Source of the DNA: Mobula hypostoma
Taxonomy: Eukaryota
DNA: 64,000 nucleotides
Assembly: GCF_963921235.1 (NCBI RefSeq)
Contig: NC_086107.1
Location: 99,510,001-99,574,000 of the forward strand
Reading direction: 5' to 3'
Below are positions 33,830 to 58,556 of the stretch, in pieces; position 1 is the stretch's first letter, and each line of letters opens with the position of its first letter. Below the pieces are notes generated by a model. That model saw only the letters and a program-made list of their open reading frames with translations, did not search any database and was not told where the DNA came from. The translations under genes were made by a program, and so were the position numbers.

Positions 33830-34760
33830 TCGGGAAATTGTGTGGAGAACGCGGGAACTTGGATCATGCAGGTCACTTAAGGACGTTTCTTGAGGAATTT
33901 CCTCTCTGCCGAGATTAATTTCCTCTTTAAATGTCGTTCCAGCCCCTACTCCCCCCCAAAAAAAGGAATATGCCACGTTCAGACGCAGGGTCGTTCTGGA
34001 AAAATATGCTTTGCTCGGTTCTTTGACGAAAGGGGTTCAAGCAACATCGCCAGTCTCGTAATTGCGAGCAATGCAGCCACAGTCTCTCCCTCTCCTCCCG
34101 CCTCTAGCAATTTTTGAACTTGGTCCGCGCTGCGTCACGAGCCGCCGCCGTTGGCTGTGACGTCAGTTCCGGCGAGAGGGCTCGCGACGAGGCAGCCTAG
34201 ATCGAGCAAAACAAGGCGGTGGAAAATAACTCGATGCGAACCGGAGGCGTCTCTCGCGTTAACACCGAGCAGCTGTGCGCCCAACCGTGGAACCAAACAA
34301 GTGTCTCTGAGTTTGTCTGTGTCTCGGATCTTCTAAAAAAAGAAAGATGTCGGCACAGGCCCAAATGAGAGCCATGCTTGACCAGCTCATGGGCACATCT
34401 AGGGACGGTAAGCGCGTGAGTGGTGAGACCTGTCCTTATTTTGTTGAAATTTAATGTCGATGTTTCCGTATGAATAGGTATAACATGTCCGCTATGAGAA
34501 CCCGGCCAATATGGTGGCAGAAGCTGAAATCCTGACTCTCGTTCTCTCCCCGCCTCACTTCAAATGATTGATGGGTACCATTAGCCAATGGGATTTGAGT
34601 TCTCATGGATCGATGGTGGCCTTGGCCAGTCAAGGGAGACCGTTTGCGGATTGACCACCAGATTATCCAATAAATGAAGAAACGTCGTTTGTCTTTTGCA
34701 GGATGGCGGGATTTGAGACGACTAGCTGTATTTCGATTGGCTTCTGTGGAGGTTGAAGCG
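33830..34760 (+). promoter_or_regulatory. CpG-rich promoter/first-exon region of LUC7L2 with CRE and ETS-like motifs
   Basis: Local CpG enrichment in an otherwise CpG-poor window; TGCGTCA at 34131, TGACGTCA at 34158-34165 followed by TTCCGG at 34167-34172; directly upstream of the LUC7L2 ATG. Confidence 0.75.
34347..34407 (+). CDS. LUC7L2: LUC7-like 2, coding exon 1 (MSAQAQMRAMLDQLMGTSRD-G)
   Basis: ATG at 34347, ACG|gtaagc donor; 61 nt; matches the LUC7L2 N-terminus as I recall it (AML/TSRD rather than LUC7L ALL/TARD). Confidence 0.9.
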
Positions 34761-34979
34761 AGCCAATTGGTTTTAAATGGGTGGGACTTTCTCCATTCTC
34801 AATTATTTTGGGGTTTGAGTCATTTAGCGTTTCAGAATTGTAGCATTGAAAAAGAGGAGGGATTTACATCGCAGTAATTCACCAATACTGTTCAGTTGAG
34901 CTGACTAATTCAAATTATTAACAGAAGGAAAAAAATCAGAACAGTGGAAATCTGCGACTGAGCATTTCTCAACTGAAAT

Positions 34980-35420
34980 GTCAAAGTTTATTATCAAAGT
35001 ACTTATGTGTAGTATATGTCACCATATGCTACCTTGAGATTCATTTTCTTACAGCCATTTACAGGCAAATAAAGACATACAACAGAATTTAAGAAAAGCA
35101 TTAAGTAAAGACTGACAACCAATGTGCAAGACAAATTGTGCAAATAAATAGTACCGAGAACATGAGTTGTACAGTCTCTGAAAGTGAGTCTGTAAGGTTG
35201 TTGAATCAGTTCAGAGTCAAGGAGAGTGAAGTTATCCACAATGATGGTTGAAGGGTAATACCTTTCTGAATTTGGTGTGTGGGACCTTAGGCACCTGTAC
35301 TTCCTGCCTGATGGTAGTAGCAAGAAGAGAACATGGCTTGGATTTTGGGAGTCTGTGATGGATGCTGCTTTCTCGTGGCAGTGCTCTTCGTTAGTGTACT
35401 CAATGGTGGGGAGGCCTTTG
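34980..35420 (-). mobile_element. Rex1/L2-like LINE 3'-end derivative (similar pieces at ~300-560, 17075-17720, 20230-20520, 36560-36950, 44360-44850)
   Basis: caaagtttattatcaaagta tail and tacttcctgcctgatggtagtagcaagaagagaacatgg motif (LLPSGRKYR). Confidence 0.6.
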
Positions 35421-38389
35421 CCTGTCAGTAGTTCACTATGGATTTTATGATTCATTTGGTACCACCATATTTCCCAGTTATTCCAGTTTCTAACTAACCA
35501 CTCCTATCAATCCTATCATTTTCATACAGACTTCATTCAGTATCTGTGATGTAGGGTGTGCTGTCTATTGATCAGTACTCATAGTTGCTTTTGGTGGTTA
35601 TAGAGTTTATAGATGCACAAGTAGATACATTATTTGTTAAGCACATTGGGGGGGAAGGTTTAAGAACTTTTGGAACTATTTCATGGATGGAATTGACCTT
35701 GAAGGCTCACATAATGCTTAAGATTCATTTGTTTAGAAAGTATATTTCTCTCAATTGTATCTGTGTAATCATTCCTAGGTGATTTATTCTATCAAGTTCA
35801 ATACTACAGTCTTATACCATACACATGGAGGCTGTCCTGTGTGATTCTATGCTTTCTGCAGCATTGTATGCCATACTTGTTGTTTGATCAAACATAAGTG
35901 TGTATCTCATCATCAGTACATTTTTTAATCAAATCATCCTGCTAGTAAGGATTAGGATCAACTTTGATATCCCTTTGATTTTTTTTCTGTATTTCTTTTG
36001 TCTTTTTAAATCTTTGTTTAAACAGTGAGTGCTGAAGACATCTGGGGGAAATGGCTTGGAGAAGCGTTACCAACGGTATGAGGGAACTAATTTAACACAC
36101 ACACAGCTGAAGTGGTGAGAGTCCCTCTTTTCAAGTCACCATAAATCCATCAGTTTGTCACTACTGAAGATTATGTTACATGGGAAATACTAGGTTAAAA
36201 TGTATTCACCTAAGTATCAGTACACTACCAGAAAAGTTGGTTCTTTACTAGGCAAGTTTATGAGGGGACATGAAGATGCTCTGAAGGTGCATAGCATTGC
36301 ATAAAAATAAAGTTTTTTTTTCAAAACTTCATCGATTGACTTAGATTACAAGAATCAAATCATAAAATGCTGGAAAAATATGCCAGATTGTTTTAGTGAA
36401 CTGGGAAACAATCTTTTATGTGGGTGAGTTTTGGAGCTGGAAATGTTAGTAAATAATAGGAAGGGAATAGAGGAACAAGGTAGGCTGTGATGAGATGAGA
36501 GGCTGAAGAGATTTTGACAATAGGGAAAATGTATAAGATAAAGTTCGAACTAAAATTATTAAAATCAAAATAATGTATGTCACCATATACGACCCTGAGA
36601 TTCATTTTCTTGCATTTACAGTAGAACAAAGTTTTTCAATGATTCTATTGTATTTCTAAGTGCAAAGTCTGACAACCAACTAATATGCGAAAGATACAAA
36701 ACAAAAATAATAAGAAGAAGAAATTAATACTGAGAACATGAGCTGTAGAGTACTTGAAAGTGACTTCATAGTTTGTGAAATCAGTTCAGTGTTGAGTGAA
36801 ATTATCCATTCTGGTTCAGGAGCCTGATGTTTGAAGGGTAATGGCTGTTCCTGAACCTGGTGGTGTGGGACCTAAGGCTCTTAAACCTCATTTCCAGTGG
36901 CAGCAGCCAGAAGAGAGCAAGGTCTTGATGGTTCTTGATGATGGATGAAGGAGTTCACAAAGAAACAAAAGATGGGTCTATATACAGTGCAAAGTGATTT
37001 GGTGGATTTTTAAACTAGCTGCGTTATATGTTGTGTTTTGTTGAAAGGTGTAATGCTGTTTCTTGAACCTGTATTGCATTTTATTAGAAAAGATAGATCG
37101 TCAAGGTTACAGTGGTAAGAATTAAGTTGCCACTGAACCAAAACTTGCAGAATGAACTGGTATGTTCAAATACAGCCATCCAATAATCAGTGCTTGGTTT
37201 TTCACCATTGTAGAGGAGACTGATTTGTAAGCAGCAGTTGTATAATATGAAATTGAATGATGCACAAGTTAATTATGGTTTTATCTGGGAAATGTATTTA
37301 GGGTGCTCAACTATTGGAAAATGAGGTATGAGACCAGGTATTCTATTTTTTTTGGAATTGTATAGGAAATGTTTGTGAGAGATGGTGGGAGGTATTTATG
37401 AAAATTGAGTATTTGTGTTGTAAATACCATGAATTGGGCAATGAGGTTAATTTGAGTATCAGGATATAGGCAGCAAGGTTGATTTGTCCTTTAAATAATA
37501 GGTGCTCCTATTTAAGTAACTTCATAATTGAAGGGGATTTCCATAATCAGCTAATAATGGATATAATCCAAAAAAATCATCCAAATCTTGTAATCCAAGT
37601 TCGTCTGAATGAAGTTATCAGTACTAATTTTTTTTAAAAGTATTTTTACTCTAAATCTTTTCAACCAGCAATGCTGAAAATTGATCGACAAAGCATGACC
37701 ACGCAACTTTGTAGAGCTTGCCACTAGAATCCAAAGTCTTATTTTTTTTCTGTAATTTGAAACTTTAGGTTTATTTGATTAAAATGTTCAAGTTATCTTT
37801 AATGAATGAAAAACATTTCACAAAATACGTTTACTGACCAGCAGGATAACATTCAAGTCATTTAGGACAAAAGATTTAAAGTAACTTTGGCCTGGCCTTT
37901 CTTGGAGTTAAATCTAAATAATGGCACGTTAAATTGTTCTGAGTTAACAGGTAATTGCATGTGAGTGTCTTAATATTGGATTGACTCTTAGTATAAGATG
38001 ATGCAGTATATTAGAGGGTCAGATCTGCAGTCTTTTATACAATATTGGTCATGTATTCACACGTGAAATTTCACTGGAGTATTTAGTTTGGTTGCTTCTC
38101 AACTTGAATTAAACTGTAGCAATCAAGAGGGAGATTAGGGTGCTGTTCCATTGCAAGTGCTGTATTTGTAAAGGCAGTTTTGTATCTGTTTTAATTTTTA
38201 ATTTCCTCTACATTAGAACTTGATTCAAGTAGGAAGGTGCAGTTATATTTGTACGGCACAAAATTTTGCATTTTAACCCAAAGATATGTCAAATATATTT
38301 TAACAGTGAGAATTACAGAACCTTCACGATAATGAGGTTCTGCTCAGAGTGAACAAGTATACATATGAGCAAAATATTTTTCTTAATAT

Positions 38390-38930
38390 TTAAGACCTAA
38401 GGCATGGGAGCAGAATTAGACCATTCAGCTCATCAAGTCTGCTACACTATTCCATCACGCCTGGTTTATTATCCGCTCAACCCCAATTTCTACCTTCTCC
38501 CTGTAACCTTTGAAGCCCTGGCAAATCACAAACCTATCAGCTTCTGCTTTGGATATACCCAATGACTTGCCTCCACACCTGATTGGGGCAGTGAATTCCA
38601 CAGACTCACTACCCTTTGGCTAAAGAAATTCCTCCTCAATTTGTTCTAAATGGACATTACTCTATTCCAGGGGTTCCCAACCTTTTTTAGGCCATGGACC
38701 CTTGCCATTCACCAAGGAGTCCGTGGACTCACCCACCGCAAGAAACATCCTCTCTACAGCCACTTTCAGTATTCGATAGGTTTCAATAAGATGCCCTGTC
38801 ATTCTTCCAAATTCCAGCTAGGACAGTCCAGAGCCATCAAACACTCCTCGTGTGTGAACCCTTTCATTCCTAGAATCATTCTCGTGAACGTCCTCTGGAC
38901 CCTCTCCAATGCCAGCACATCTTTTAGGAT
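38390..38930 (-). mobile_element. Degenerate CR1 LINE 3' fragment with a small hAT-like piece
   Basis: CR1 tail motifs; CAGGGGTTCCCAACC at ~38668. Confidence 0.6.
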
Positions 38931-40333
38931 TAGTTTACTTAATATTTATAGTTGCTTTAGGCAATTTATCAAGAAAATACAAGGAGTTATTGGAAGTCAG
39001 TTACTGTGCTTAAGGGACATTGAAAGGAGAAAGGAAAGATGTATGAATCAGCCAAAATGCTGCCTCTCTTCATTCTTGTGTTCACAGTAAAACACAAGAA
39101 AATATGAGCAGCAGCATACCATTTGGCTCTTTGAACCCATCCACAGTTTAATATGATCATGGCTGATGTGTGATGATCTCAAATTGTAATTCTTTTTCTC
39201 TGCATGGTTGCTGCCTGAGCTGTTTCTGTTTCAGGTTTCTAGCATCTTCTATATTTTTGATGAGTAAATGGTTAGATTTTTTTTCCCAAAGATCTTTTCC
39301 CAAAGTTAGTTTACTTGAAGTAAATAGGATAGAAAGGCTAAAGGTGATGCCAGTTGTATCATATTTTTACTAACCTCTAAGTATCTTCTTTGAGAACAAT
39401 CATTCTGTGTAGGGGAGATAATATCTATGATCCCTGTGGTTGGTACAGAATTATAGAGATCCATTAACACAATAGGTCAAATAAAATTCAGATTAGCTTA
39501 TCTTGTGCTTACTCCCTGCATTTGTTTCTCCAGCCATTTTTGGAGTGTAGTATTTAGGATGAGCATCACTTAACCTTCAGAGGACATATCTGGCCCCTGA
39601 CTGTCCAGATGGTGCCTTTGGACAACCCAATGGTGTTAAAAACCTTTGTAGATTTTTAAAATATCTCCAGTTGGAGGCATTTTAAATTTATTTGAAAAGT
39701 TGAGGAGCCAAATGAAATGTAGGACATTTGTGTTCCAGCTTTAAGATTCTGTAATGAATCCAGCAAATGAGTGGAAGGTCAGATGCACATGATTTCTGTT
39801 ATAATGCACAGGTGAGAAGTCAGCAATGCTTTGTATGTACTGCCTGCTGACCAGCTAAAAATTGATATACCTTGATTCAATTTGGACTATTTTGTTGGGG
39901 GTTGGGAGGATGAGCACTTCTGGCATCGGAAATAACTTGTGGATTCGAACTTGTCGTTGATAAACATGTTTGCATGAGACCTTGAGAAGGCAGACTGTAC
40001 AGAGTTGCTCATCAGTTTGCTGGAATTTTTTTTACAATAGCTTGTTTTTCTAAGAAGATAATGTTATAGGGTAAGTATAAATTGTGGCATTGTCATCCTA
40101 TTTGAATGGGCCCGACTTAATCCTAAATTAAATGCTTCTTCAAATATGTCCATAGATTTGTTGAATCGAGTAGATGCACTTCCATTTCCTCCCCTGACGC
40201 CCTATTCTTTGCCCTGCTTCAATTAAACCTTAGCCTCTCTTGGATCTCTGGCAATTGTTATTTTGCATTTGTAGAAGAGGAAACAATGTAGAAAATAAGA
40301 GCATCTAAAGCTGCCAATGTTCATGTGATATCT

Positions 40334-40533
40334 CAAACAAGAGAAAATCTGAAGATGCTGGAAAGCCAGGCAACACGCACAAATTGCTGGAGGAACTCCA
40401 CAGGCCAGGAGGTATCTATGGAAAAGAGTACAGTCGACTCAGTCCTGATGAAGGGTCTCATCCCAAAACGTCAGCTGTACACTTTTCCATAGCTGCTGCC
40501 TAGACTGCTGAGTTCCTCCAACATTTTGTGTGT
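40334..40533. mobile_element. Older-subfamily two-arm Penelope pLTR insertion
   Basis: Same layout, decayed hammerhead (CTGATGA...AAAACGTC); TSD TTCATGTGATATCT at 40320-40333 and 40534-40547. Confidence 0.8.
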
Positions 40534-43187
40534 TTCATGTGATATCTAGCCAGTAATGCATTGATTTTTTAAAAAATTATTTGAATGGCATGTGCCAGTA
40601 TTAACTGCAGAGAATTGAAGCCACAAGCTTAAAACCCGTTTAGCTTAAACACATGTTTTTAAACAAAATGTCTGCGTTGTCTAGTCTGTTCATCTTGTTA
40701 AAGTGACGATATTGTAACTGCTGAGAGTGCATGCTCCTCGTTTCTGAAATGTGTACAGGTTTATTATTCAGTAGGTTGCTCATTTAGAAACAATGAAGCT
40801 TTAAGCTTTGAAAGCCTAGAACTACAAACTAAAACCTATTTATATCTGGGTTTGTTATATTTACAATGATAAAATTGTTTTGGACATAATTTGAGAAGAC
40901 ATGATTCTGCTGTCTGGATTTACTAAATGTGTGGGGTCTCTTAACCATCAATGTATTCAAAGAATGTTTTAGCTTGATTGCATTTGTGTATACGTCTCTC
41001 ATTTTCATACATATTCACTATACAGGTGGCCTTCACATCAGAGCTGTTTGGGTAATGGAATTTTTGCTTAAAAATAAGTTTTTCAAATTTAATTTTTTAA
41101 TTGCATACACAAAGGATGTGGCTTTGCAGAATGGAAAATCACAATTGGACCATACTCTAGAAATGCAACATCCACCTCCCACTGTATTTTGGGGGTCACC
41201 TGTATTGAAATTTAGATCTTGATTCATTTTAGTTTCATTCTTTCTTGGGATGCCAAGACAGTTGAATGTTTTGTTTCTTGGTGTTGTCAGTTTTAAAAAT
41301 TAAGGTTCACCTAATCTTTTACTGAATTTTGCAATGTGATCTTATTAACGCAAAAATCAGCAAGTTAATTTTGAAAATCGATAAGTAAACATGTCAGTCA
41401 CTTAGAATTTTGTCAAATCTGCTTCACCAAGAGAACTTCTATCTTTGAATCCTGGGCCAATGCCATTTTTTTAAAATCTTGCTGAGTAATAGGAATAATG
41501 TACTTGTTCTTTATTGACCTTATTTTACCTTTATTTTCCTTACCACACACAGCAAGCCAATGCACTGCCTCTGTGATATATCCACTTTTTTCAATGTCCT
41601 TCTTCAACAAATTCAACTTAGTATATACAGTAGTGTTTTTTTTTCCTCTTTTATCTTTAAATCATCTTTTCCTGAACCTTTCATTCATGAAGTGTCTTAC
41701 ATTGGCTTCTCAGTCCACTCCAGTATTGTAACCTTGAAACGTAATAATCATAATGACATAAACTTGTCCCTGTACTGCAGCAAATTAAATCATTTTCTTG
41801 TATAAAAAGTCCACTGCATTTTATTTTGCTGTTGTTATGTAATAGCTTGCATCATCCACAAGTGTATTCCACTTTACACCAGTTTTTGGATTCTAGGAGT
41901 TCCTTTGACAAATTACAGTAGTCTTTGTGAGTAGTTATTTCTTTTCCATGGCAACTAGTTCTTAATTCTTTAGAGGTTAGAATTTTAGAGCTGTTTGTTT
42001 CTATGGAGTTCAGTAAGTTCTTGGGATGTAGTGTTTTAATTGTGTTATACTGCAAGTGAAATTATTTTTGGTGCAGGCTCAAAATGAATAGATTAAAGTA
42101 AAATCGGAAAATTCCAGTTTTGTGGTCTTTTCCTTCCGAGTAAAAGCACTCTAAACTTTCTTACTGGTTGAATGTTGTGGACTATTGCCCACAACATTAA
42201 CTACACTTCTGAAATCAATGTAACACATTTTGGGATGTCTCAGTGGTGTTCTGTAAACTCACTTTGGCTCATGTTTATGTGGCTCAATTATTTTGAAAAG
42301 ATTAAACCAAAAATTTCAATCCCCATTTCATTGACACTGGTGACATTAACACCTGAAGTGATTTTTTTGTTTTTAAATGCATTCAGTCATTTGACCACAG
42401 ATGTAGATTAAGTGATTGACTTCAACATCCATATCAATTAAATTTGTATTACAATTTGAATCAAGTGTTTGTTGGCATTTGTTCTCTAAGTGGGAAGGTG
42501 CTTTTGAAATAAAGACAAATTACCTTTTTGCCCTATTTTATGCATTGCTGAGGCTAGACTTTTAAGAACAGAAGAATGTCTCAGGAATAGAACATCTGGC
42601 ACTTCCACCCTGCTCTATAGTTCATCAAAAATCATGGCTGATCATCTCCCTCAACTCCATTTTCTTCCAGTATCCCATTATTCTTTATTCCCGTATTATC
42701 CAGAAATCTAGCCATCTGTTTGAATGAACTTAATGATTTAAGCCACCACAGACATGTAGGACAGTCAGCTCCATAGATTCACCTCACTCTGACTGAAGAA
42801 AAATTCTCCTCTTAGTCCTTAATAGGGTACTCCTTATTCTGTGACAGACCCTCGACCCTCGAGTTTTAACCAGGAAAAATATCTAGCCTATCAAGCACTG
42901 TAGAATATGTTGTAAGAGTGATTTAATAATCATGTAATCAAAAATATCTGTATAGCTTTTATGAAGTTGAAAATAGCATTTTGATTTGAAAATTTTTAAG
43001 GAAATAATCATGCAGTTGGGGGAGGGGTGGAAAATTTTGCACGATTGATCAAGGGCCACATTAATAAAGGACTGCAGTTTGTTGTGTAGAATTACTGCCC
43101 CAAGTTAAAAATAAATTAAGAGTTTAGTTACAACAAATTCTTTCGAAAGTACTTGAAAACCAGCTATGGCATGATGCTTTAAGGCAT

Positions 43188-43394
43188 CACACATAAAAGT
43201 TGCTGGTGAACGCAGCAGGCCAGGCAGCATCTCTAGGAAGAGGTGCAATCGACGTTTCAGGCCGAGACGACGAAGGATCTCGGCCTGAAACGTCGACTGC
43301 ACCTCTTCCTAGAGATGCTGCCTGGCCTGCTGCGTTCACCAGCAACTTTTATGTGTGTTGCTTGAATTTCCAGCATCTGCAGAATTCCTGTTGT
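43188..43394. mobile_element. Palindromic two-arm Penelope pLTR insertion in LUC7L2 intron 1
   Basis: ~80 bp inverted arms; TSD ATGCTTTAAGGCAT at 43174-43187 and 43395-43408. Confidence 0.9.
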
Positions 43395-46300
43395 ATGCTT
43401 TAAGGCATGTTTAGCTGTAAATCTTATCTGGTCTGTGGTTAGCTGTTGATGCAAATGCTGGAAGAACTTGATTGAAGTATTTAGTTTACATCTTTTGTTG
43501 TTTACAAATTTCACAAAGACTTTTCAAAATAGGATGACCACTCAACTATGTTTTTTTTCAGTAACAAAGACTTAAATGTTTAAAAGCATTATTCCTGATA
43601 AACTGTTGTTCTTAAAATAAGTCTCTGTAATTATTGGAAATAAATCAGGTTGTATGCTTTGCTTTTATTTGAGAAGTGACAGTTTGTTTTCAGTCAAAAA
43701 AAACCTTGGTTTAGTGGTATTGTTTCAGTATTGACGTTTTCATGTAGTTGCTATTAATTTTTGTCTTACTGTAACTATACTCTTCTTAAGCCCATCACTC
43801 CTGCTGGGGCGTAGGCTGCTGACAGCAGCTCACCGGAGTTTTTGAGGTCTTTGGAGCTTTTGCTGGCATTTCTATAGTACTGGCTTTTTATGGGATGGGG
43901 CTCCTAGCCCCATGCCCAACCCTCTTCCTTTCGCAGCCAGGCCTGGGATTGTCCATGGAGGAATTAATTGTACTCTTGCCAGGGTGTTGTAGTAACGGGG
44001 CTATGAAATCATAGGTAAAATTTAATACTTAGGAGTAGTTATGAACACATGTGAGATACCTCATTACAGATTTAACATTATGGAATGTCCAGGTGACAGA
44101 CCTTTATACCATTTATCCAAGCACAATTCTAGGAGGCTAAATGCTCATTAAATGAATGCTGCAGCCTTCTATCCTACAGAGGAGTGAAACATGCTTGTTG
44201 GATTGATTAGCGTAATTTAGTTACTGTTTCACTTGTGGTCAACGATGATAAATTTCCATGTACTCAGATCCATTTTACAACTAACCTTCAAACAGTTTTG
44301 CCCAGTTTGCAAGGAGGGGGAAAATTAAATTGTGTATTTTCTCGTGGCTGTCAAGCAGAGTTCAAGTTCAAGTTCTATTGCCATTTCAACAGTATGCATG
44401 TATACTGCCAAATGAAATAACATTCCTCTTGACCAAGGTGCACAGCACAGTATGTATAACTCTCACATAAAATAATGTTACCACAAATAATTTAACAATT
44501 AATAAAGTGCATTTGCATTGCAAGTTAAAAAGTAAACAGCATAATGCTGCTGACGCCGCATATGTGGTGAGAGCTGGGTGGTGGCATGCAGTTCAGTTGT
44601 TCCACAACCTGGGGAAAGAAGCTATTCTGCATCCTAACAGTTCTTGTCCTCATATTATGGTACCTCCTGCCTGATGGTGGGGGGTCAAAGGGATTGTTGG
44701 ATGTATGGGAGGGATCACTGACAATGCTAAGGCCCCTGCATACACAGTGCTCTTGGTAAGTACTGTATCTCAGATGAATGAAATAGAGACCCCGATGATC
44801 TCTGCAGTTGTCACAATCCTTTGTAGAATCTTGTAGTCAGATGCCTTACAGAGGAATGTTAACAGGAGCAAAATAACCTGTTTTAAATCATTTGTAAAAT
44901 TAGCACTTGTTTCTGTTTGTGTTTTGCTTGATTGCTAGGTAATTGTGCAACATTTTCTGTAGTTTTCCTAATCTGTGAGTCCACTTTGTTGGGTGGGGGC
45001 TGTTCTCATCTGGTGCCCTTGATTGTTAGTGGAGGAATTAGACTCTTGTGCTGTGGTGTGGTTATTTCATTGTGTTCTTTGTCATGATTTTTTTGGACAT
45101 TCAAAATATACATGGTAGGATTTTATTCAGATTACAAACAAACAATTCTGAATCTTGTTAGACTAGAGGTTTTGGGTTTTGGTAAAATTTGTTTAATCTC
45201 ATGATGCCCACAAAAATGTGTTTTAGCTTCCTAATTTTTGCTTAATTCCCAGTTGTTTAAAATTAACTCCTAAACAATGTTTTGTGATCACTATCACCTA
45301 TTTGAACATTTTAATCTGGTTAATGGAACTTTTATGCATCTTATTGATCTAGTCTCCAGTCTGCATGCATATATTTCAATTTATCATTAAATTGGAGCCA
45401 CTTTCTAGATAGGTTCAGTGCCCTGTTCCTGGGTTGTACTGTTCTAGGCTTTGTAGAATTCTATTAATCAATACTAACCAATAATGCAGCACTGATTCAG
45501 TTCTGCAGTGCATTGCTGGTGTTTCTCAACATTAGTACTGGTAAGTTTTTGGATTGTTGCATGAATGTAGAAGTACCAGATTTACTGGCTGAACTTGCTG
45601 TTGAATTCCCCACTGAACAGGAGCTTGATGAGGTTCTTCAGCATTGGAGAAGTTGCTCTTGGAACCCTGATCGGTATTTGTGAGCCAGTTCATTTGAATG
45701 GTGATTATAGGACTGCATTGAAGAAGGGAAAGACCCAAGGTGAATTACAGTTTTTAGATAAAACTTCGGCTTTGGCAGAATGGCAAAGCTGAGGTGGGGT
45801 TTGCAAGCTGACAGAAAAACTTCCAAAGGAATAGTGTGAGACTTTTCTGGCTTCCCATCATGCCATTGCAATGTTTGGCGGGGTCATCTTAATCAGCGAG
45901 ATAGACTTTTCAGATCCAGCCATGGGAAAATGAGTTGAAGGAAGTCAATGAATGTGAGCAGAAGCCTTCACTCCAGAAAATCTGGGCCAAAGTGCTACAC
46001 TATTGTAATTAGATATTTATGCAATGTGCATTTGGCTGAACTAGTAACTCACTTATTTGGCAGTCAGACAATAGTTAGTTTATTACAAAACTTATCAAAT
46101 ATGACCTACTTATTCAATAGTGCCCATTCTTTATAATTTGATCTAAAATATTGTAATAAAGCTGCTGGTCAATAATTCGTGTTTCTGATGGCTTTTAATG
46201 TATTTCAGTTAATTTTTTTTGAGATCCAGTGCATTCCCATTGGGCTTTTTTAGGTGAAGGTGGGGCAGTATTTGTTTAGAAATAATTAAATAGTTCAAAT

Positions 46301-46581
46301 AACAGGGTTTGGGAGAGGCATGTGGGGGAATAGTTTAAGTTTGGGGAAATTCAATTGTTTTCATGAGACATTCTAAACTGGCATATGTCTGATTACTTGG
46401 ATCAGAAGGAAAGGACTTTTATATTTAAAGCCTTTGGGTTGCATATAACTACAAAAGTTTTTTTTTCTCCCTTCCTTGGAATGTAATACTGCAGTTAGAT
46501 ACATTGTTGAATTTGCTGGGCGTTACTCTTTTTTTTACCTATACAAACTGAACAATTTGGCCCCTTGTTTTATTTATAAAG

Positions 46582-46652
46582 GTTCAGTGTATCTTTGCCT
46601 GCCTACTTCAGTCTGCAAGGGAGTTACAGAAACACCCCACGTTCATCGAGCC
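46582..46652 (+). other. LUC7L2: LUC7L2 intron-1 cassette (poison) exon A, 71 nt, frameshifting
   Basis: Pyrimidine tract + ataaag| acceptor and GCC|gtgagt donor; inclusion gives TGA at 52951-52953 in exon 2; one frame reads LPAYFSLQGSYRNTPRSSSR, ungapped-similar to a human LUC7L2 alternative N-terminus recalled as MPAYLNLQGSVRKAPHSPSR. Confidence 0.8.
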
Positions 46653-48135
46653 GTGAGTCATGACTAATTTTTCCAGCTGTGTTAATAAATGTGGACAAGG
46701 AAACGGTCAATTTTAATAGCTACAATATTCAAAGATACGGTGTACACAACAGTGAAAAATGAGTAGTCTGCAAAGCAGTAGCAACTGGCCAGACCAATTT
46801 GATATGTAGGTTTACCTTTTAGGGGAAAATTAGTAAAAGGAACACTATTACTAATTTACAAGCAGCAATTTGAGACCACTAGATTTAAACTGGGACCAGT
46901 AATTACTGGACACATGGTGTGATTTTAGTTTACTCATCACAATATGAGTATTCTGGAGCAGTTCAAGATTTGTCACATGTTTTATTGTTTTAACATAGAT
47001 TTGCTATTTTAAAACCTCTAAGTTATGAGAATTGGTTTTACCTCTCATGATGTTTTTCACCTGGGTAGAGGAGGAGCCAAATTGACCTGGTACTGTGCAT
47101 ACAAACACACTGCAATAAACATTTGCATGTTAGCTTTTGAAAAAAAGTTATAATTTCTGCTCCGGGTCAAAGTCTGCAAATAACCAAATTGCACTTGATA
47201 GTTGATGTCTAAGGTGTCAGGTGGTTCTGGCAAAAGCCGGAATTTACAGGTTGAATCGCCACCTGTGTTCAGACTTCATTAATGAAAATGTACTCTTAAA
47301 ACCTGATATTATCCATTTAAGTAATCTTACCAAATCATGTCCATTCTCCATCATATGTACAACAATGCAGTGTACTTATTTTAGCTCATGAGAACCCCAA
47401 GGCTCTTCTCCCTTAGTGCAGCTATTCAGGACAAAATGATCTGCAGACTTGTCATCACTGCTGATTTTGCTTGTCCTTTCTACTACTTTCTTATTTACAG
47501 AGGGAAGAGAAAATATTTCCTGCTTAATCCTATTTTCACTTTAAGCATCTAAATATCTTTTCCGTGAATATGTGAGGTACATATATACAACAGACCGTGT
47601 TCTAATTTACTCCTGGAATATTTTTAGAAATTGCAAGTGGACAAAGCCACCATCATTAATTAAAATGCAAGTAAAAGTTTGATTCCCATTATAGAATCAA
47701 AACTTGGAGTAGTCCTCCCATAAAATTTGGTATTCTTTCTCATTCCCCGAGTGTAGCAGGCATTTGCTCTTCAGTTCTGAGTTTTGTTTTTGTAGTAACT
47801 AATCAAATTGGATTTTCTATGGAATTGTTGTTCTGGTTCATTTTTTAAAATGTATATCGCGAATGTGTGTCATTTTAAAAAAGAGAACATTTTCACAATA
47901 ATTGTTTAACCAGAATGTGTAATGAAAAAGTTTAAATATTCCATGGTTGTTCATCAAGGTTTAAGCTTCAAGCCAGTGCTTTCTACTGCAAACTTCTTAG
48001 TTACTTCTGTCAGGAGAAAGTAAATATTGGATGGTACAGCTAATAATAACTCTATCCCTTATCAATATTTTCATGCTCTGGAGTTGAAAGCATTTGTAGC
48101 TTTTGTGAGGCGGCTTTCTCTCCTGCTAATACCAG

Positions 48136-48195
48136 GAGGAGTTAACCCTTTTGCGGACTCCATGTGAGGAATGCGAGCTCAGCAATCTCTGGAAC
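48136..48195 (+). other. LUC7L2: LUC7L2 intron-1 candidate cassette exon B, 60 nt, in-frame stop followed by in-frame ATG
   Basis: ctttctctcctgctaataccag| acceptor, AAC|gtaagt donor; TGA at 48165-48167, ATG at 48171. Confidence 0.6.
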
Positions 48196-51100
48196 GTAAG
48201 TTTGGGAGAAGAGCAGTTCATCGCCTTTTTAAAGGCACACATCTTGAGTCTGGAAATATTTTGTCCATATTGAAAACAGTATTTTATCTAGGTTAGCACT
48301 AATAAGGATTAACCATTTCTCTAGAATATCACTTTGATTAGTTTGGGAGTTTTGTGGAAATGTTTTACTGTGGTGTCTTCGAGATTTTCCAGAATTATTT
48401 TTAATTTGCAACTGATCTGTTGTGTTTTCTTTAATCACAACTGAAAATACTGCTGCATTTTAATCATAAAAATGAATAAAATAGCTCCAGTTTTAAATCA
48501 AGTGGCCTTAATTGCTTCAATCTTGTAACTTAGCAATAGACTTTTCTGCAGTTAATAATCCTGATGTCGTAGGCTACAAGATCATTTATTGTACAACAAA
48601 ACTGTTACCTAAGTAGCTAAGAGGATGTTATACACCCAAATTTCATTGAAGGAAGAGTACATAGAATTGTTACGTACAATAGTTTGTACATGACTATCAA
48701 ACAAGGCTTGACATCGGGCAATTGGGTACATCTGTTGTATTGTAAGGTTATTGGGTATATTTGTTTGGTGGGATGACTAAAACCATATTTACCCCTGTGT
48801 TGTCCCTGGACTCTGCCATTTGCCCGTTGTGTAAAATATTCTACATACAAATCCTTGTTTATGGTTAATTCAATTGTGCATTTCTGGACTAAACAATGAA
48901 ATGCGATCAAAACTGGAAATGTGATTTTTTTTTTGTTTGCTTATTGCCCATTACTTTGAAATGGCTTCTTAATTTGTCTTAAGTTGAATTTAGATTTGAG
49001 TTGGCTTATGTAGCATTGTGTAGCTATTTGATTTCACAGTTTAATTCAGTGTTTGAAAATGAAAATACTGTAAACATAGGAAAGACCAATTTTAATACAG
49101 TTCTGAGGTGTAGTAATTTTAAATTTTATGGGATAGTTAAGAGTCCAGTCAACAATATGATAATGGCCAAGCTATGGAAAAGATGACACTACATTTTGCT
49201 GTGCCTGTTTCGTACATATGCACAGCCATCCAACAGTATCAACTCACATTGTGTGTATGCTATTCCACCAAACCTGAATTGTCACCAAAAGACATTTAAA
49301 AGCACTTTCTTCTCATGGGCTTTTCTTGAGAAAAGTTAGTATTTTCATGAGCTATTGAATGATATTTTCAGATATTTAAATACTGTCAAAATCAGATGAT
49401 TTGATCCTCTGGGTCTGTAATTCTTTCGCAAATAGCAAATATACCCAATAACTTTCTGTTCACTAAATAGAACGTTAAAATGCTCCTCAAACCCTGGTTT
49501 TAATTTAAATGAATCTAACTATATAATTGGAACTGAGCTTCACTGATGAAAATCTCTTCTGAAGAGAGACTTATTTAAAATATAGCCTGAGCTTAAGGGT
49601 TAATTTGTAACTGTATAAATTTCAAAGATGTAATTTAGAATTTAATACATCTTGAACCTGGGTTTCCAAATAATTGGTATAAAATACACTTTCTATTCTG
49701 CAAATAGATTATGGATGTGCTCAAAGTTTAAACCCGATTGTTGTACCAGTCATTATTGCTTAGTGTTTCCAAAAATTAGAATTGTCCATGCAAAATTGTA
49801 ACAAATGACCTATTAATTAAGCTGTAAGATATTCATTATTGGGAATTCAAATTTTTACTTTTACCAATATTAATGTCAAGGCTTGTTTTGAAAACGTATC
49901 AAACTAATGCATATGGCATTCTATGTATGATCTTACAAGCAATAGGATTGAATGAAAGATTTAAGCTGAAGCCACCAGCAGTTGAGGCCCGTCCGGTTTG
50001 TTTCCAAACCCAAGACTTTACTGTATTCCTCCACCATTCTGTTTTTCCTATTCTAGTTTAAATCACTCCTTAGGGAAAGGATAATATCTACCTCTTCTTG
50101 CATTTTCTTTTGAACTTGTGTGATTTCAATTTTGAAAAGTTTAATAGCAACTGCTTTGATTAGAACGTATATCAGAAGTTTATTTTTATTAATGCCCATG
50201 AGTTGTCTCCAGCGTATGAGAAATGATCTTTCTCACAGTTGTGCAGTGCTAAAAAAAAACCTACATTTTAATTTGGAATGGCCTTCAGGGAAGTGAACTG
50301 TTAATCAACCAAGTATTTACAGGTGGTACTTTGCATACATTGTTTAAAACCAAAAAGCAGGTACTTTAGTTTCATTTTTACTTGATGTGTGATTAGTGCA
50401 AGTCCCTTCTTGCAGGTGTGTAATACTGAACGCTCTCCCCTTTTTAACTTCCCAACATCCAGGGTATAAAACACTGTGCAGCTGAGTCACTAATAATGGA
50501 AGAGATGGAGGCTGGTGTCCTCGCAGTGTGTATTCTCATTTTGCAAGCTTTTCAATTTACTTATTCTTAATCCCTTTTTTGTTCTAAAAGAAAAAAACAA
50601 GGATTGTCTGCAGTTGATTTCAAATGACTATTGTACTGGACTGAAAGAATTCCATAAGGTATCATGTCTTGGAAAATAACAATGTACAGAATATTGGGAA
50701 GTGGAATGGGGAGTTAATGAAGGCCATGTAGTTCAGACAAAATCAACTATGCAGTTTATGGTTTATTAATGTAAATTATGGAAAAGGTATTTTTAATGTT
50801 TTTTTGTACGCTGAGAAGTTTATATCCATTAAACAATGCTTTACTCTCACAGGAGTTCACCTGGCATGCGGTCTAAGTTTGGACCACTGCAACACAGGAT
50901 CTGTAGGGTAGGGTGATGCAACTACCAAAATTATATTTGTGAAATTTGCATATTGTTTGGCGTGTGATCTTAATGGAGCTTATGTTATTTCCCATGTGCT
51001 TTTTTTTTCGTAACAGCATCCTAAATTTTGCCACTTGCACAAATGGGTTTAGAATTAACAAGTTAACTGCTTCGAGTAGTTTAGACAAGTGAACGCATTG

Positions 51101-51272
51101 CACTTCTGTGATATAACTGAGGTTATAAAGTACTGGGCGGTGATTTATAATGTATTTATAACTCGTCTTCTCAGTGGTGTTTTCATCTTTTTTTTAATTT
51201 TTTTTTTAGTTTTATGTGATTTCAATGTGTTTTTCTCCTGTCCGTTATCGCTCTCATATGTAATGGCTCCAG

Positions 51273-51344
51273 TGCAGCTAGATGAAAGAAGTGCGTGGGC
51301 AGGTGTATAAAGTGGGTTCGAATCAGGTCAGTATGGAGAATACT
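51273..51344 (+). other. LUC7L2: LUC7L2 intron-1 candidate cassette exon C, 54/72 nt, in-frame stop
   Basis: Long U/pyrimidine tract, ctccag| acceptor; donors CAG|gtcagt (51327) and ACT|gtaagt (51345); TAA at 51308-51310 in the exon-1 frame. Confidence 0.5.
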
Positions 51345-52890
51345 GTAAGTGACCTCCTCTGAATACCCTTACTTAAATTGGAATCCTAATTTTAATTTGG
51401 TTTTTTTGGCATGATCGCTGTCTAAAATGGAATTCAGTCAGTCATTTAAATTGCTTCAAGTGGTAGTGCATCTTCTTTGAATCTTTTAGGAGCCTCATTC
51501 GGATGAAACATTTCCCTTTGTTTCTCTTAAGGTAGGACAAGGAGTTCAGACTTCTTTTGAATGAATTTGTTGATATGGACCTCTTTGCCTGTTCTGGTAA
51601 CTTTGAAATGAAAATGTAGTCCAATGTTATACACACTGCACTCTAAGCATGCACAGTCCAGATAGACTGGCAATTTTGTTGGTGGGCTTTGTTCCCTGAA
51701 ATTTAGTTATCATAAAGTTAATTTTCCTTCAGGTTTTATTTCCAAGACATGGTACTTGCCTGGAACCTTCTTCACTAAAGACTGATAGATGACCTCTTAA
51801 AATGCAAGTTGCCCTAAACAAACATGAAATCATCTGTGTGATTTTTTTTTACCGACAGTAAAATGTACTTGTCTGTAAAAGTATGTTTCCAATGGCTGCC
51901 TTGTCCCGTAAGTCAGACTCTAAATGAATTGCCAGTAGAAGGCTACTGTATTTACCTTGTATCTTGTAAACCATTGAAATCCAAACCAGATGTTGCTCTT
52001 AGCCCATATGAAGAGGGAAAATTCTTCAGCTGATTTTTAATGAGTCCTCACTACTGCTAATTTTGATGGTGTACGCAGAGCAAAGTTCACTTTTTGGGAT
52101 GGTAATATATTTGAGAATAATAGTCTCTGGAATATTGTGGGTTCTATAATCATAAATTTTCCTTGTATGCCATTGTACTGCCGATAACAGCAGCAATTTA
52201 AGTGTATATACATGAGCTGGTTATCGGAAGGTACTTGAGAAAACAGCGATTAACCCCTGAAGCTTATTGTTTCAAAAGTAATCCCAATCTGTAATATTTT
52301 CAAACATAGAATTTTATTTAAAACAATTCTAATACTTCATCAAATTTATTGCTCTTGTGTAACTCTATAAAAATTATCTTGCTTTCATTGAGTCCTGTAG
52401 TAATGAATAACTTAATATCAGGCAGCCAATAGATAGACAAAAAGAAACTATCTTGATTTCCATAATTATCTGACGTGCTATGTCAAATAAACAATTGAGT
52501 AGCAAGAGGTTGGATCTAAATTGGTAAAGGAGCTTGAACCCCATATTCAAAATATAATGTTTTAATTAATATTTCAAGCCTTTGGTTCTAAGAACCTGTT
52601 TGTTGTAAAAATAACTGGAATTTCAATAGTTATGGGCTTGTAGTTTTACTGTAAATTTTCAGACTCAACTATTATAATTTTCTTTTTGGTAAGACCTTCA
52701 AACCATCAATGAGTTCTGCCATGGGCTCATTGTATGTATCTATTTTAAATTGTTCATTTAATTTGGGAAAGGTGCAAGATATTGGAAACATACTTTGTCA
52801 GAGGCTTAGAGATTAAAAATAACTTGTTTTGTCTTGTGATTTCTAGTTTCCTGTCTAACCTTGTCTTGCACTATGACCCGTGTATTACAG

Positions 52891-52985
52891 GAGATGCCAG
52901 TCGGCAGAGAATCAGATTTACAGATGATCGGGTCTGCAAGAGCCATCTCCTGAGCTGCTGCCCACATGACATTCTTTCTGGAACG
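52891..52985 (+). CDS. LUC7L2: LUC7-like 2, coding exon 2 (GDASRQRIRFTDDRVCKSHLLSCCPHDILSGT)
   Basis: ttacag|GA acceptor, ACG|gtaaac donor; 95 nt, phase-compatible with exon 1; start of zinc finger 1. Confidence 0.93.
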
Positions 52986-54130
52986 GTAAACTATTTTGTT
53001 AATTATATACACCTTTTTTTGGCGTTGAACATGATGAAATATTGGAAATAGTTTTGTGCCTTTTGTAATTTTAGATGTCTTTCATTCTTATTTTCATGAC
53101 ATTGGGATTGCTTTATAAAAAGACCACACTATAGTGAGATTAAGTTGGCTCAATAGAACCCTTCCATTTGATTCAATGTGAAATAAGCAAATTCATTCAT
53201 TCTGCTTTTTCAATCTACTTTACCTGAATTCACATTTGCTGCTGTCTTATATAAAGTAGTGGTGCAATACGTAGTTTTGAAATCACACGATTATATTTTA
53301 GTTTATACAATACACTAATGCTGTGCTAGTTGATGTGTTAATTTTGCATTCTAAGGTTACTCAATTTGTTTTAGTTCTTTGGGTTTCAGCTCATTTTTGG
53401 AATATATTCATGAAGCCATCACTATTGCCATTTTTTGTGTAAAACAACGAGACACGTTGCAAAGTTCAGTTAATGCACTGTACATAATATGAGCAAAACA
53501 AAGCAAATTTACTATGTCACAGTTTTATACGGCATGAAAATTTATAATGGAAAAGGGATTGTTTGTGTCCACTTAGTGCCTTTCCTATCCCCAGGAAGTG
53601 AAAAAAGTGCTTCATGTCACAGTTGCAAAGGAAGAAGTATACATGCAGCAAGTTTCACACACTAGTTTTGTAGTGAAGAGTTAGATTGATAGTCAAGAGC
53701 ACCTTTAGTCCACTAATCTGTAAAATGTGACATGGGATGATTTATGTTCTCTATAAAATTCAACGAGTGCTTCCTCAGTTCAGCTTTGGAGTGTCAGCCT
53801 AGAATTTTGTGCTCTCATTTCTGCAGTAGGATTAGAACCTTATTCAAAGCTAAGTATACTAGCCATTAAGCTATGGCTAAGCATGTTCAAATTCAGAATG
53901 TGTTATCCAAATGCTACTATGTCACTTTAATCAAAAACAAAAAGCCTGCAGATTGTAAAATTCTGGGAAAAAAATAGTAAATGCTTGGGCAGCATCAGAG
54001 GAGGCAAATAGAATTAATGTTTTTGATTGATGAACTTTAACCATAAAAAAAAGAATATTAGAAATCAAGTAACACACATCAAAGTTGCTGGTGAACGCAG
54101 CAGGCCAAGCAGCATCTGTAGGAAGAGGTG

Positions 54131-58457: not shown

Positions 58458-58556
58458 CGAATGGACCTCGGAGAGTGCACAAAGGTTCATGACCTTGCAT
58501 TAAGAGCAGACTATGAAATTGCCTCCAAATTGAAGGACCACTTTTTTGAAATGGAT
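58458..58556 (+). CDS. LUC7L2: LUC7-like 2, coding exon 3 (RMDLGECTKVHDLALRADYEIASKLKDHFFEMD)
   Basis: cctacag|CGA acceptor, GAT|gtaagt donor; 99 nt; completes ZnF1; later exons lie beyond the window. Confidence 0.93.

Follow-up and report, generated by a model that had tools for sequence, protein, structure and literature searches.

The window analysed here is a stretch of 64,000 nucleotides (nt) from Mobula hypostoma (contig NC_086107.1 of assembly GCF_963921235.1, positions 99,510,001 to 99,574,000, forward strand), and positions are counted along it. It carries a LUC7-like gene, the downstream exons of which encode FIEIREKLEEL; since the closest named proteins are 'Luc7-like 2' of four cartilaginous fishes (Pristiophorus, Scyliorhinus, Amblyraja and Callorhinchus), the gene was assigned as LUC7L2. 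Three further LUC7 genes are found in the same 3.48-Gb genome, namely LUC7L (C36), LUC7L3 (C68) and a LUC7L-like gene (C80). The dosage of the LUC7 proteins, which define two 5′ splice site classes, is of importance in both myeloid neoplasia and cell metabolism; in the current model, LUC7 feedback operates through one right-handed poison exon. The subject of this work is intron 1 of LUC7L2 (34408-52890; 18,483 nt), in which an earlier note had described an array of three candidate poison exons, termed here units A, B and C, all of them with 'right-handed' donors. The comparisons presented below make it on balance probable that this intron contains one known regulatory exon (A), one new conserved exon-like element (C) and one chance look-alike (B). 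What is new is the C element, as A has already been published as a human cassette.

Holocephalans, here Callorhinchus milii, represent the deepest split within the cartilaginous fishes. The LUC7L2 loci compared were those of C. milii, the skate Amblyraja radiata, the frogs Xenopus tropicalis and Leptodactylus fuscus, the finch Taeniopygia guttata and one teleost (LUC7L2-like locus from GCA_022985145.1). Intron 1 was compared with that of skate by global alignment of positions 45700-53100, where the median identity of 60-nt windows was 78% and neutral-looking stretches reached ∼70%. The 5′ splice site (5′SS) Balance of donors was computed following the definition of Kenny et al. (PMC11842720). 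The features of the locus are collected in Table 1; the exon 1 donor, GTAAGC, is common to M. hypostoma, skate, Callorhinchus and both frogs.

Table 1. LUC7L2 exons, exon-like units and conserved blocks in the window (a slash within a splice site marks the exon–intron border)
Feature	Position	Strand	Length	Splice sites and 5′SS Balance	Remarks
Exon 1, coding part	34347-34407	+		donor ACG/GTAAGC, Balance 0	MSAQAQMRAMLDQLMGTSRD, phase 1
Block I	35881-36171	+			84% identical to Callorhinchus over 294 nt
Unit E	36026-36075	+	50 nt	CAG/TGAGTG...CCAACG/GTATGA, Balance -1	within block I
Module A	46541-46680	+			exon A with intron flanks of ∼40 nt upstream and 28 nt downstream
Exon A (unit A)	46582-46652	+	71 nt	donor GCC/GTGAGT, Balance +3	
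Unit B	48136-48195	+	60 nt	donor AAC/GTAAGT, Balance +1	
Conserved block II	50400-51900	+	∼1.5 kb		90% identical to skate, 69% to Callorhinchus; background ∼70% to skate
Duplex 5′ arm	50655-50675	+			predicted long-range RNA duplex; partner 51739-51757, inside unit D
Unit C, as first drawn	51273-51344	+	72 nt	acceptor CCAG/TG; donor ACT/GTAAGT, Balance +2	
Unit C′	51278-51344	+	67 nt (66 nt in Callorhinchus)	acceptor GCAG/CTAG; donor ACT/GTAAGT, Balance +2, -1U	
Unit D	51733-51807	+	75 nt	TTCAG/GTTTTATTTCC...TGCAA/GTTGCC, weak donor, Balance -2	in block II
Unit F	52480-52498	+			homolog of a short 5′ exon, MSNK(R/Q)SG-DASRQ, of skate isoform X3 and catshark isoform X2
Exon 2	52891-52985	+	95 nt	donor ACG/GTAAAC, Balance -1	
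Exon 3	58458-58556	+			located by six-frame motif search and sequence reading

The AG and GT borders of the three units were confirmed from the sequence, and their donors, like those of exons 1 and 2, read as the earlier note had them. Translation also confirmed that each unit yields a premature stop when placed after exon 1, either through a frameshift with a stop in exon 2 (A), through an in-frame TGA, after which comes an ATG that shares the exon 2 frame (B), or through two in-frame stops (C as first drawn). Conservation set the units apart. Relative to skate, exon A was 100% identical (flanks 98%), as was C (98% upstream, 94% downstream), each with its flanks falling in the 98th percentile, while B was 70% identical in the exon and 76% in both flanks, which placed it in the 22nd percentile of 60-nt windows. 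The exon and its flanks are thus conserved above the surrounding intron, as in ultraconserved poison exons, in A and C, and B fails in this respect. The sequences of B and C each occur once in the genome, and neither had a paralog match when the LUC7L and LUC7L2 copies were compared.

The element at C was redefined by the alignments. Its first-drawn acceptor is present in M. hypostoma alone, skate and Callorhinchus reading CCAA. An acceptor 5 nt downstream (GCAG/CTAG) is common to the three species, and the unit that begins there, C′, is 95.5% identical to its Callorhinchus counterpart, one 1-nt indel separating the two; over the 60 nt that precede it, identity is 92%. Both the donor and the acceptor AG are invariant in the three species, and C′ with its polypyrimidine tract forms the top conservation peak of block II, well above the block means of 90% to skate and 69% to Callorhinchus. 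C′ still gives a premature stop after exon 1, and it has stop codons in every frame; as these stops occupy all three frames and a 1-nt indel is tolerated, C′ could act only as a non-coding or poison exon. Its -1U is of a kind favoured in sites promoted by LUC7L2 (Kenny et al., PMC11842720). The possibility that C is an RNA gene was discarded (no Rfam family at E≤1, fold z = -0.18, no covariation). Judged from these alignments, C is a real and previously undescribed element conserved across cartilaginous fishes (M. hypostoma, skate and Callorhinchus), and C′ is a probable stop-bearing cassette exon.

The surrounding block II had no match in the frogs, the finch, the teleost, LUC7L or the C80 paralog, nor any Rfam family at E≤1. 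Its second conservation peak is unit D, with 94% identity to Callorhinchus at 51725-51775. In the latter species, the N-terminus of isoform X2 (P0325, MVLAWKHLHKRQIGWRLKHIR-DASRQ) is encoded by the D homolog (L030 18921-18980); in M. hypostoma and skate the D reading frame is not preserved, and in M. hypostoma D introduces stops when placed after exon 1. Block II also contains a predicted long-range RNA duplex, which has a 13-nt exact complement that extends to ∼19 bp (-34 to -36 kcal/mol) and was the best of 793 windows across intron 1, the next best reaching -27.9. Both arms are kept in the three cartilaginous-fish species, with one G·U to A-U change in Callorhinchus. Such a duplex, which shares sequence with the 5′ end of D, would loop out ∼1.06 kb including C′. 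As a separate observation, the last 3.4 kb of intron 1 (49635-53002) is 80% identical to skate and the preceding 3.4 kb ∼70%; this zone exceeds block II, extends to exon 2 and takes in unit F.

The conservation of the entire 1.5-kb block, well beyond C itself, leaves room for an account in which C is never spliced. Its donor would then be a pseudo-5′SS bound by U1 small nuclear ribonucleoprotein (snRNP), perhaps with LUC7 proteins, and block II and the duplex would form an intronic silencer or enhancer acting on intron 1 or on exons A, D or 2. Ultraconserved pseudo-5′SS that are bound by U1 snRNP and never used are on record (PMC13100119), and C resembles them in having an invariant consensus GTAAGT deep in an intron and within a conserved block; that a conserved 19-bp duplex flanks C also fits this account. 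However, C also has an acceptor and a polypyrimidine tract, both conserved and at exon distance, for which a pure pseudo-5′SS has no need. The conservation peak covers a 67-nt core, a polypyrimidine tract and an AG rather than GTAAGT only, and the Callorhinchus annotation employs D, which lies in this block too, as an exon. We consider this account fairly unlikely.

A related view is that only A controls splicing, block II and C with it being conserved for an unrelated reason such as a transcriptional enhancer. Cartilaginous-fish genomes evolve slowly and retain many non-coding elements, and no C was found outside the cartilaginous fishes compared, both of which agree with this view. Against it, block II carries strand-specific splice signals and the annotated exon D. 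Moreover, work by Lareau and by Ni in 2007 reportedly found that the ultraconserved blocks of splicing-factor genes typically overlap poison exons. An enhancer unrelated to splicing therefore appears quite improbable.

Unlike C, unit A has a clear counterpart in a paralog. When intron 1 was searched against the paralogs with blastn, module A gave the single striking match, 91.5% identity over 141 nt to intron 1 of LUC7L in the same genome (C36:102176646-786). This exceeds the similarity of the coding exons of LUC7L and LUC7L2 (84% for exon 1, 75% for exon 2). The exon A region was also recognised in LUC7L2 intron 1 of Xenopus (82%), Leptodactylus (86%) and finch (83%), with nhmmer E-values of ∼1e-32 for the LUC7L paralog and both frogs, and it was the sole conserved element of intron 1 in these tetrapods. 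In an alignment of six sequences (M. hypostoma LUC7L2 and LUC7L, skate, the two frogs and finch), the acceptor region and CGAGCC/GTGAGT were invariant. The alternative N-termini FNVSMPAYFNLQGSVRKAPHSPSR-DTTRQ of amphibians, monotremes, rodents, snakes and birds correspond to exon A read in a second frame. In M. hypostoma, a TTG stands at the position of the tetrapod ATG (MPAYF...), and because of this replacement exon A can only shift the frame after exon 1.

In human, the LUC7L premature termination codon (PTC) exon is homologous to LUC7L2 AE2 (82%), and the two have identical right-handed 5′SS with a Balance of +3; LUC7L and LUC7L2 promote their inclusion and LUC7L3 represses it in a 5′SS-dependent manner, resulting in auto- and cross-regulation, and AE2 replaces the N-terminal helix of LUC7L2 (PMC11842720). 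At the sequence level A agrees with this description throughout, and the tetrapod N-termini that derive from exon A accord with what the paper says of AE2. The alignments identify A as the homolog of this human LUC7L PTC exon/LUC7L2 AE2, i.e. as a real but already known exon. The proposal that A is a poison exon is thus upheld by this homology and by the stop obtained after exon 1, although not as a novelty, the cassette having been described in human (PMC11842720).

Some further observations concern the distribution of A. Of module A, Callorhinchus intron 1 (L030:14236-14295) retains only the intron upstream, the acceptor and some 8 nt at the start of the exon; the remainder of exon A, with its GTGAGT donor, could not be found at any position in the LUC7L2 locus of this assembly, and the cassette appears to be disrupted in this species. 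No exon A homolog was detected in the teleost intron 1 (∼1.7 kb), a locus with a 100-N gap that makes its absence uncertain. The C80 gene (∼35.59-35.60 Mb, minus strand), the fourth LUC7 gene of the genome, is of the LUC7L/LUC7L2 type (GDVNRQKVKFTDDRVCKAHLLGCCPHDILAGS...), and a search of the 12 kb that precede its exon 2 gave nothing resembling exon A. A 'second exon' that follows A in Leptodactylus isoform 3-T5 turned out to result from exon 2 having an alternative 3′ splice site further upstream, and is not a separate cassette.

For unit B, the skate sequence lacks both the acceptor AG and the donor GT and shows indels of 12 nt and 4 nt in the exon; no match to B was found in Callorhinchus, the frogs, the finch or the paralogs, even with nhmmer. 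Being unconserved, its restart ATG is under no detectable constraint, and the sequence comparisons lead us to regard B as a chance pseudo-exon. The frequency of such look-alikes was estimated for the intron as a whole. Its sense strand has 15 GTRAGT sites, as against 11.1 ± 3.5 expected from first-order Markov simulations, and with a crude acceptor filter 6 donors had a usable acceptor 40-250 nt upstream (4.2 ± 2.1 by chance); the same filter returned 6-8 donor/acceptor pairs elsewhere in the window. As a set, A, B and C are no more than expected by chance. The same holds for the handedness of their donors. The -1G is absent at 11 of the 15 GTRAGT sites, and the mean 5′SS Balance over all 15 is +1.93 (A, B and C having +3, +1 and +2), so that right-handed donors arise almost automatically because perfect GTRAGT sites were the ones chosen. 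That all three donors are right-handed is thus a selection artefact and not a meaningful property of the set. This calls for some caution in general: perfect GTRAGT sites without a -1G are supplied by random intron, and the handedness of hand-picked pseudo-exons constitutes no evidence. A tandem donor at 34416 (CGC/GTGAGT, 8 nt 3′ of the exon 1 donor), which would shift the frame if used, was likewise attributed to chance; it is not conserved in skate, Callorhinchus, the frogs, finch or LUC7L.

It follows that the array as first drawn, in which A, B and C would be three serial poison exons with right-handed donors providing graded LUC7 feedback, is highly improbable. It had in its favour the AG and GT borders, the strong intron-side donors and the premature stops present in all three units, as well as the uniqueness of B in the genome. 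The neutral identity of B, the absence of its splice sites in skate, its lack of a match in Callorhinchus and the chance-level GTRAGT count and handedness all speak against it, and the three-exon array is unsupported because B fails. Two of its members do stand: A and C are extremely conserved and have invariant donors that are strong on the intron side. The broader idea that the known regulatory cassette is not the only one in intron 1 survives through them, without the contribution of B.

Nor was the list of three units complete, since it missed the conserved exon-like units E, D and F. Unit E, when placed after exon 1, causes a frameshift with a stop in exon 2. A three-way alignment shows its ATG to be in the exon 2 frame in M. 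hypostoma (MAWRSVTNG-DASRQ), skate and Callorhinchus, and Callorhinchus isoform X3 (MTWRGIDSG-DASRQ, P0323) begins in the E homolog; a weak nhmmer match to finch intron 1 was also obtained (L032:4912-5065, E=0.005). In the case of F, the skate donor CAG/GTAGGA reads TGA/GTAGCA in M. hypostoma. Left-leaning or weak donors are seen in E and D, with Balances of -1 and -2, and therefore the conserved alternative exons of intron 1 are not uniformly right-handed. In the NCBI annotation, four transcripts each in catshark (XP_038639354-57) and skate (XP_032869098-101) encode only a protein that starts at the exon 3 methionine (MDLGEC...), which suggests that several 5′ variants disrupt the exon 1 frame. 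The N-terminus of Pristiophorus isoform X2 (MLVWTG) was also considered, and no counterpart was found in the window. By these comparisons, intron 1 is richer in conserved alternative exons in the cartilaginous fishes than in the frogs and finch.

These alternative N-termini, several of which are joined to exon 2 (Callorhinchus X2 and X3, skate X3, catshark X2 and Pristiophorus X2), could also be explained if block II were an internal promoter or 5′-untranslated region. C, D and F would then be first or early non-coding exons of isoforms that skip exon 1 and differ at the N-terminus, and not poison cassettes; the isoforms would be devoid of the SmE-contacting helix. The identity to skate of the 3.4 kb before exon 2, 80% as against 70% further upstream, and the use of exon A as a coding alternative exon in tetrapods agree with this explanation. 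On the other hand, C and D have conserved acceptors and polypyrimidine tracts, which gives them the look of internal rather than first exons, the open reading frame of D is not preserved in M. hypostoma or skate, and C lacks a conserved ATG in the exon 2 frame. An internal promoter, and with it isoforms without the helix, is accordingly regarded as unlikely.

Two observations on the intron as a whole may be added. Nearly all of its 31-mers were present in several probable RNA runs of M. hypostoma and relatives, which fits with abundant unspliced or retained intron 1. A palindromic repeat lies at 43184-43398 and 40336-40542, and copies in both orientations were found in the LUC7L, LUC7L3 and C80 loci. 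It has a sub-threshold Rfam match to mir-3926 on both strands (46 bits; gathering score 82), and it looks like a transposon of the miniature inverted-repeat transposable element type rather than a microRNA.

Under the explanation that we favour, i.e. a known regulatory exon A, a new element C and a look-alike B, splicing of A after exon 1 would introduce a 71-nt frameshift and a stop in exon 2, committing the mRNA to nonsense-mediated decay. By analogy with the human exon, A would be a LUC7-responsive cassette that acts through its invariant right-handed donor. C, with C′ as its core, would most likely be a second cassette exon of cartilaginous fishes that carries stops and is included in RNA; the RNAs containing it would be degraded, and its inclusion may follow LUC7 levels. 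C′ would be placed within a 1.5-kb splicing-control block, together with the alternative exon D and the conserved long-range duplex. A two-sensor LUC7 feedback through A and C′ is possible, though doubtful at present. A more elaborate scheme can be put forward only tentatively, namely that cartilaginous fishes have a multi-exon module (E, A, C′, D and F) of which A and C′ respond to dose and in which the duplex chooses the cassette, tetrapods being reduced to AE2. In such a module, A (GCC/GUGAGU) and C′ (ACU/GUAAGU) would be independent cassettes that carry stops and invariant right-handed donors and respond to LUC7L/LUC7L2 dosage with redundant or graded feedback, and the 19-bp duplex, by looping out C′, would set which cassette is offered to the spliceosome.

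Several results weigh against this explanation. Searches for C in both frogs, the finch, the teleost, LUC7L and the C80 paralog gave no match, so that it is either lineage-specific or lost elsewhere. As all of block II is conserved, that AG and GT are kept at C offers no independent proof of splicing. The Callorhinchus assembly lacks the body of exon A as well as its donor, so that the module is not essential in all lineages. Activation by LUC7L/LUC7L2 requires a right-handed donor, but such a donor does not suffice for it (Kenny et al., PMC11842720). Finally, the exon content of the four 'X4' transcripts cannot be read from the protein-level annotation. If C′ is nevertheless a true second element, the sensor of the ancestral jawed-vertebrate gene may have been richer than that of the human gene, or cartilaginous fishes may have invented such a sensor, and with either origin the locus would offer a naturally occurring test case for whether a series of poison exons influences a splicing factor's dose-response.

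Work by Daniels et al. in 2021 is said to have described the LUC7L PTC exon/LUC7L2 AE2 as an auto- and cross-regulatory cassette. Unit A is like this human cassette in its intron 1 position, flanked by the MSAQAQ exon and the zinc-finger exon 2, in being shared by the paralogs (91.5% identity here, 82% in human), in having the same donor with a Balance of +3 in both of them, and in giving a premature stop when placed after exon 1. It differs from tetrapod AE2 in that the tetrapod copy doubles as an alternative N-terminus, while the M. hypostoma copy, with its TTG, cannot start translation by itself. C shares with the human cassette the logic of the donor (Balance +2, -1U) without being homologous to it in sequence. 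A wider comparison is offered by the ultraconserved poison exons that occur in genes for SR proteins, hnRNPs and similar splicing regulators (Lareau et al. 2007 and Ni et al. 2007, as cited in PMC9808567). A and C are alike to these exons in being short and stop-bearing and in that the exon and its flanking intron are more conserved than the neighbouring coding exons; C joins them as a candidate by sequence, with a conservation documented within the cartilaginous fishes.

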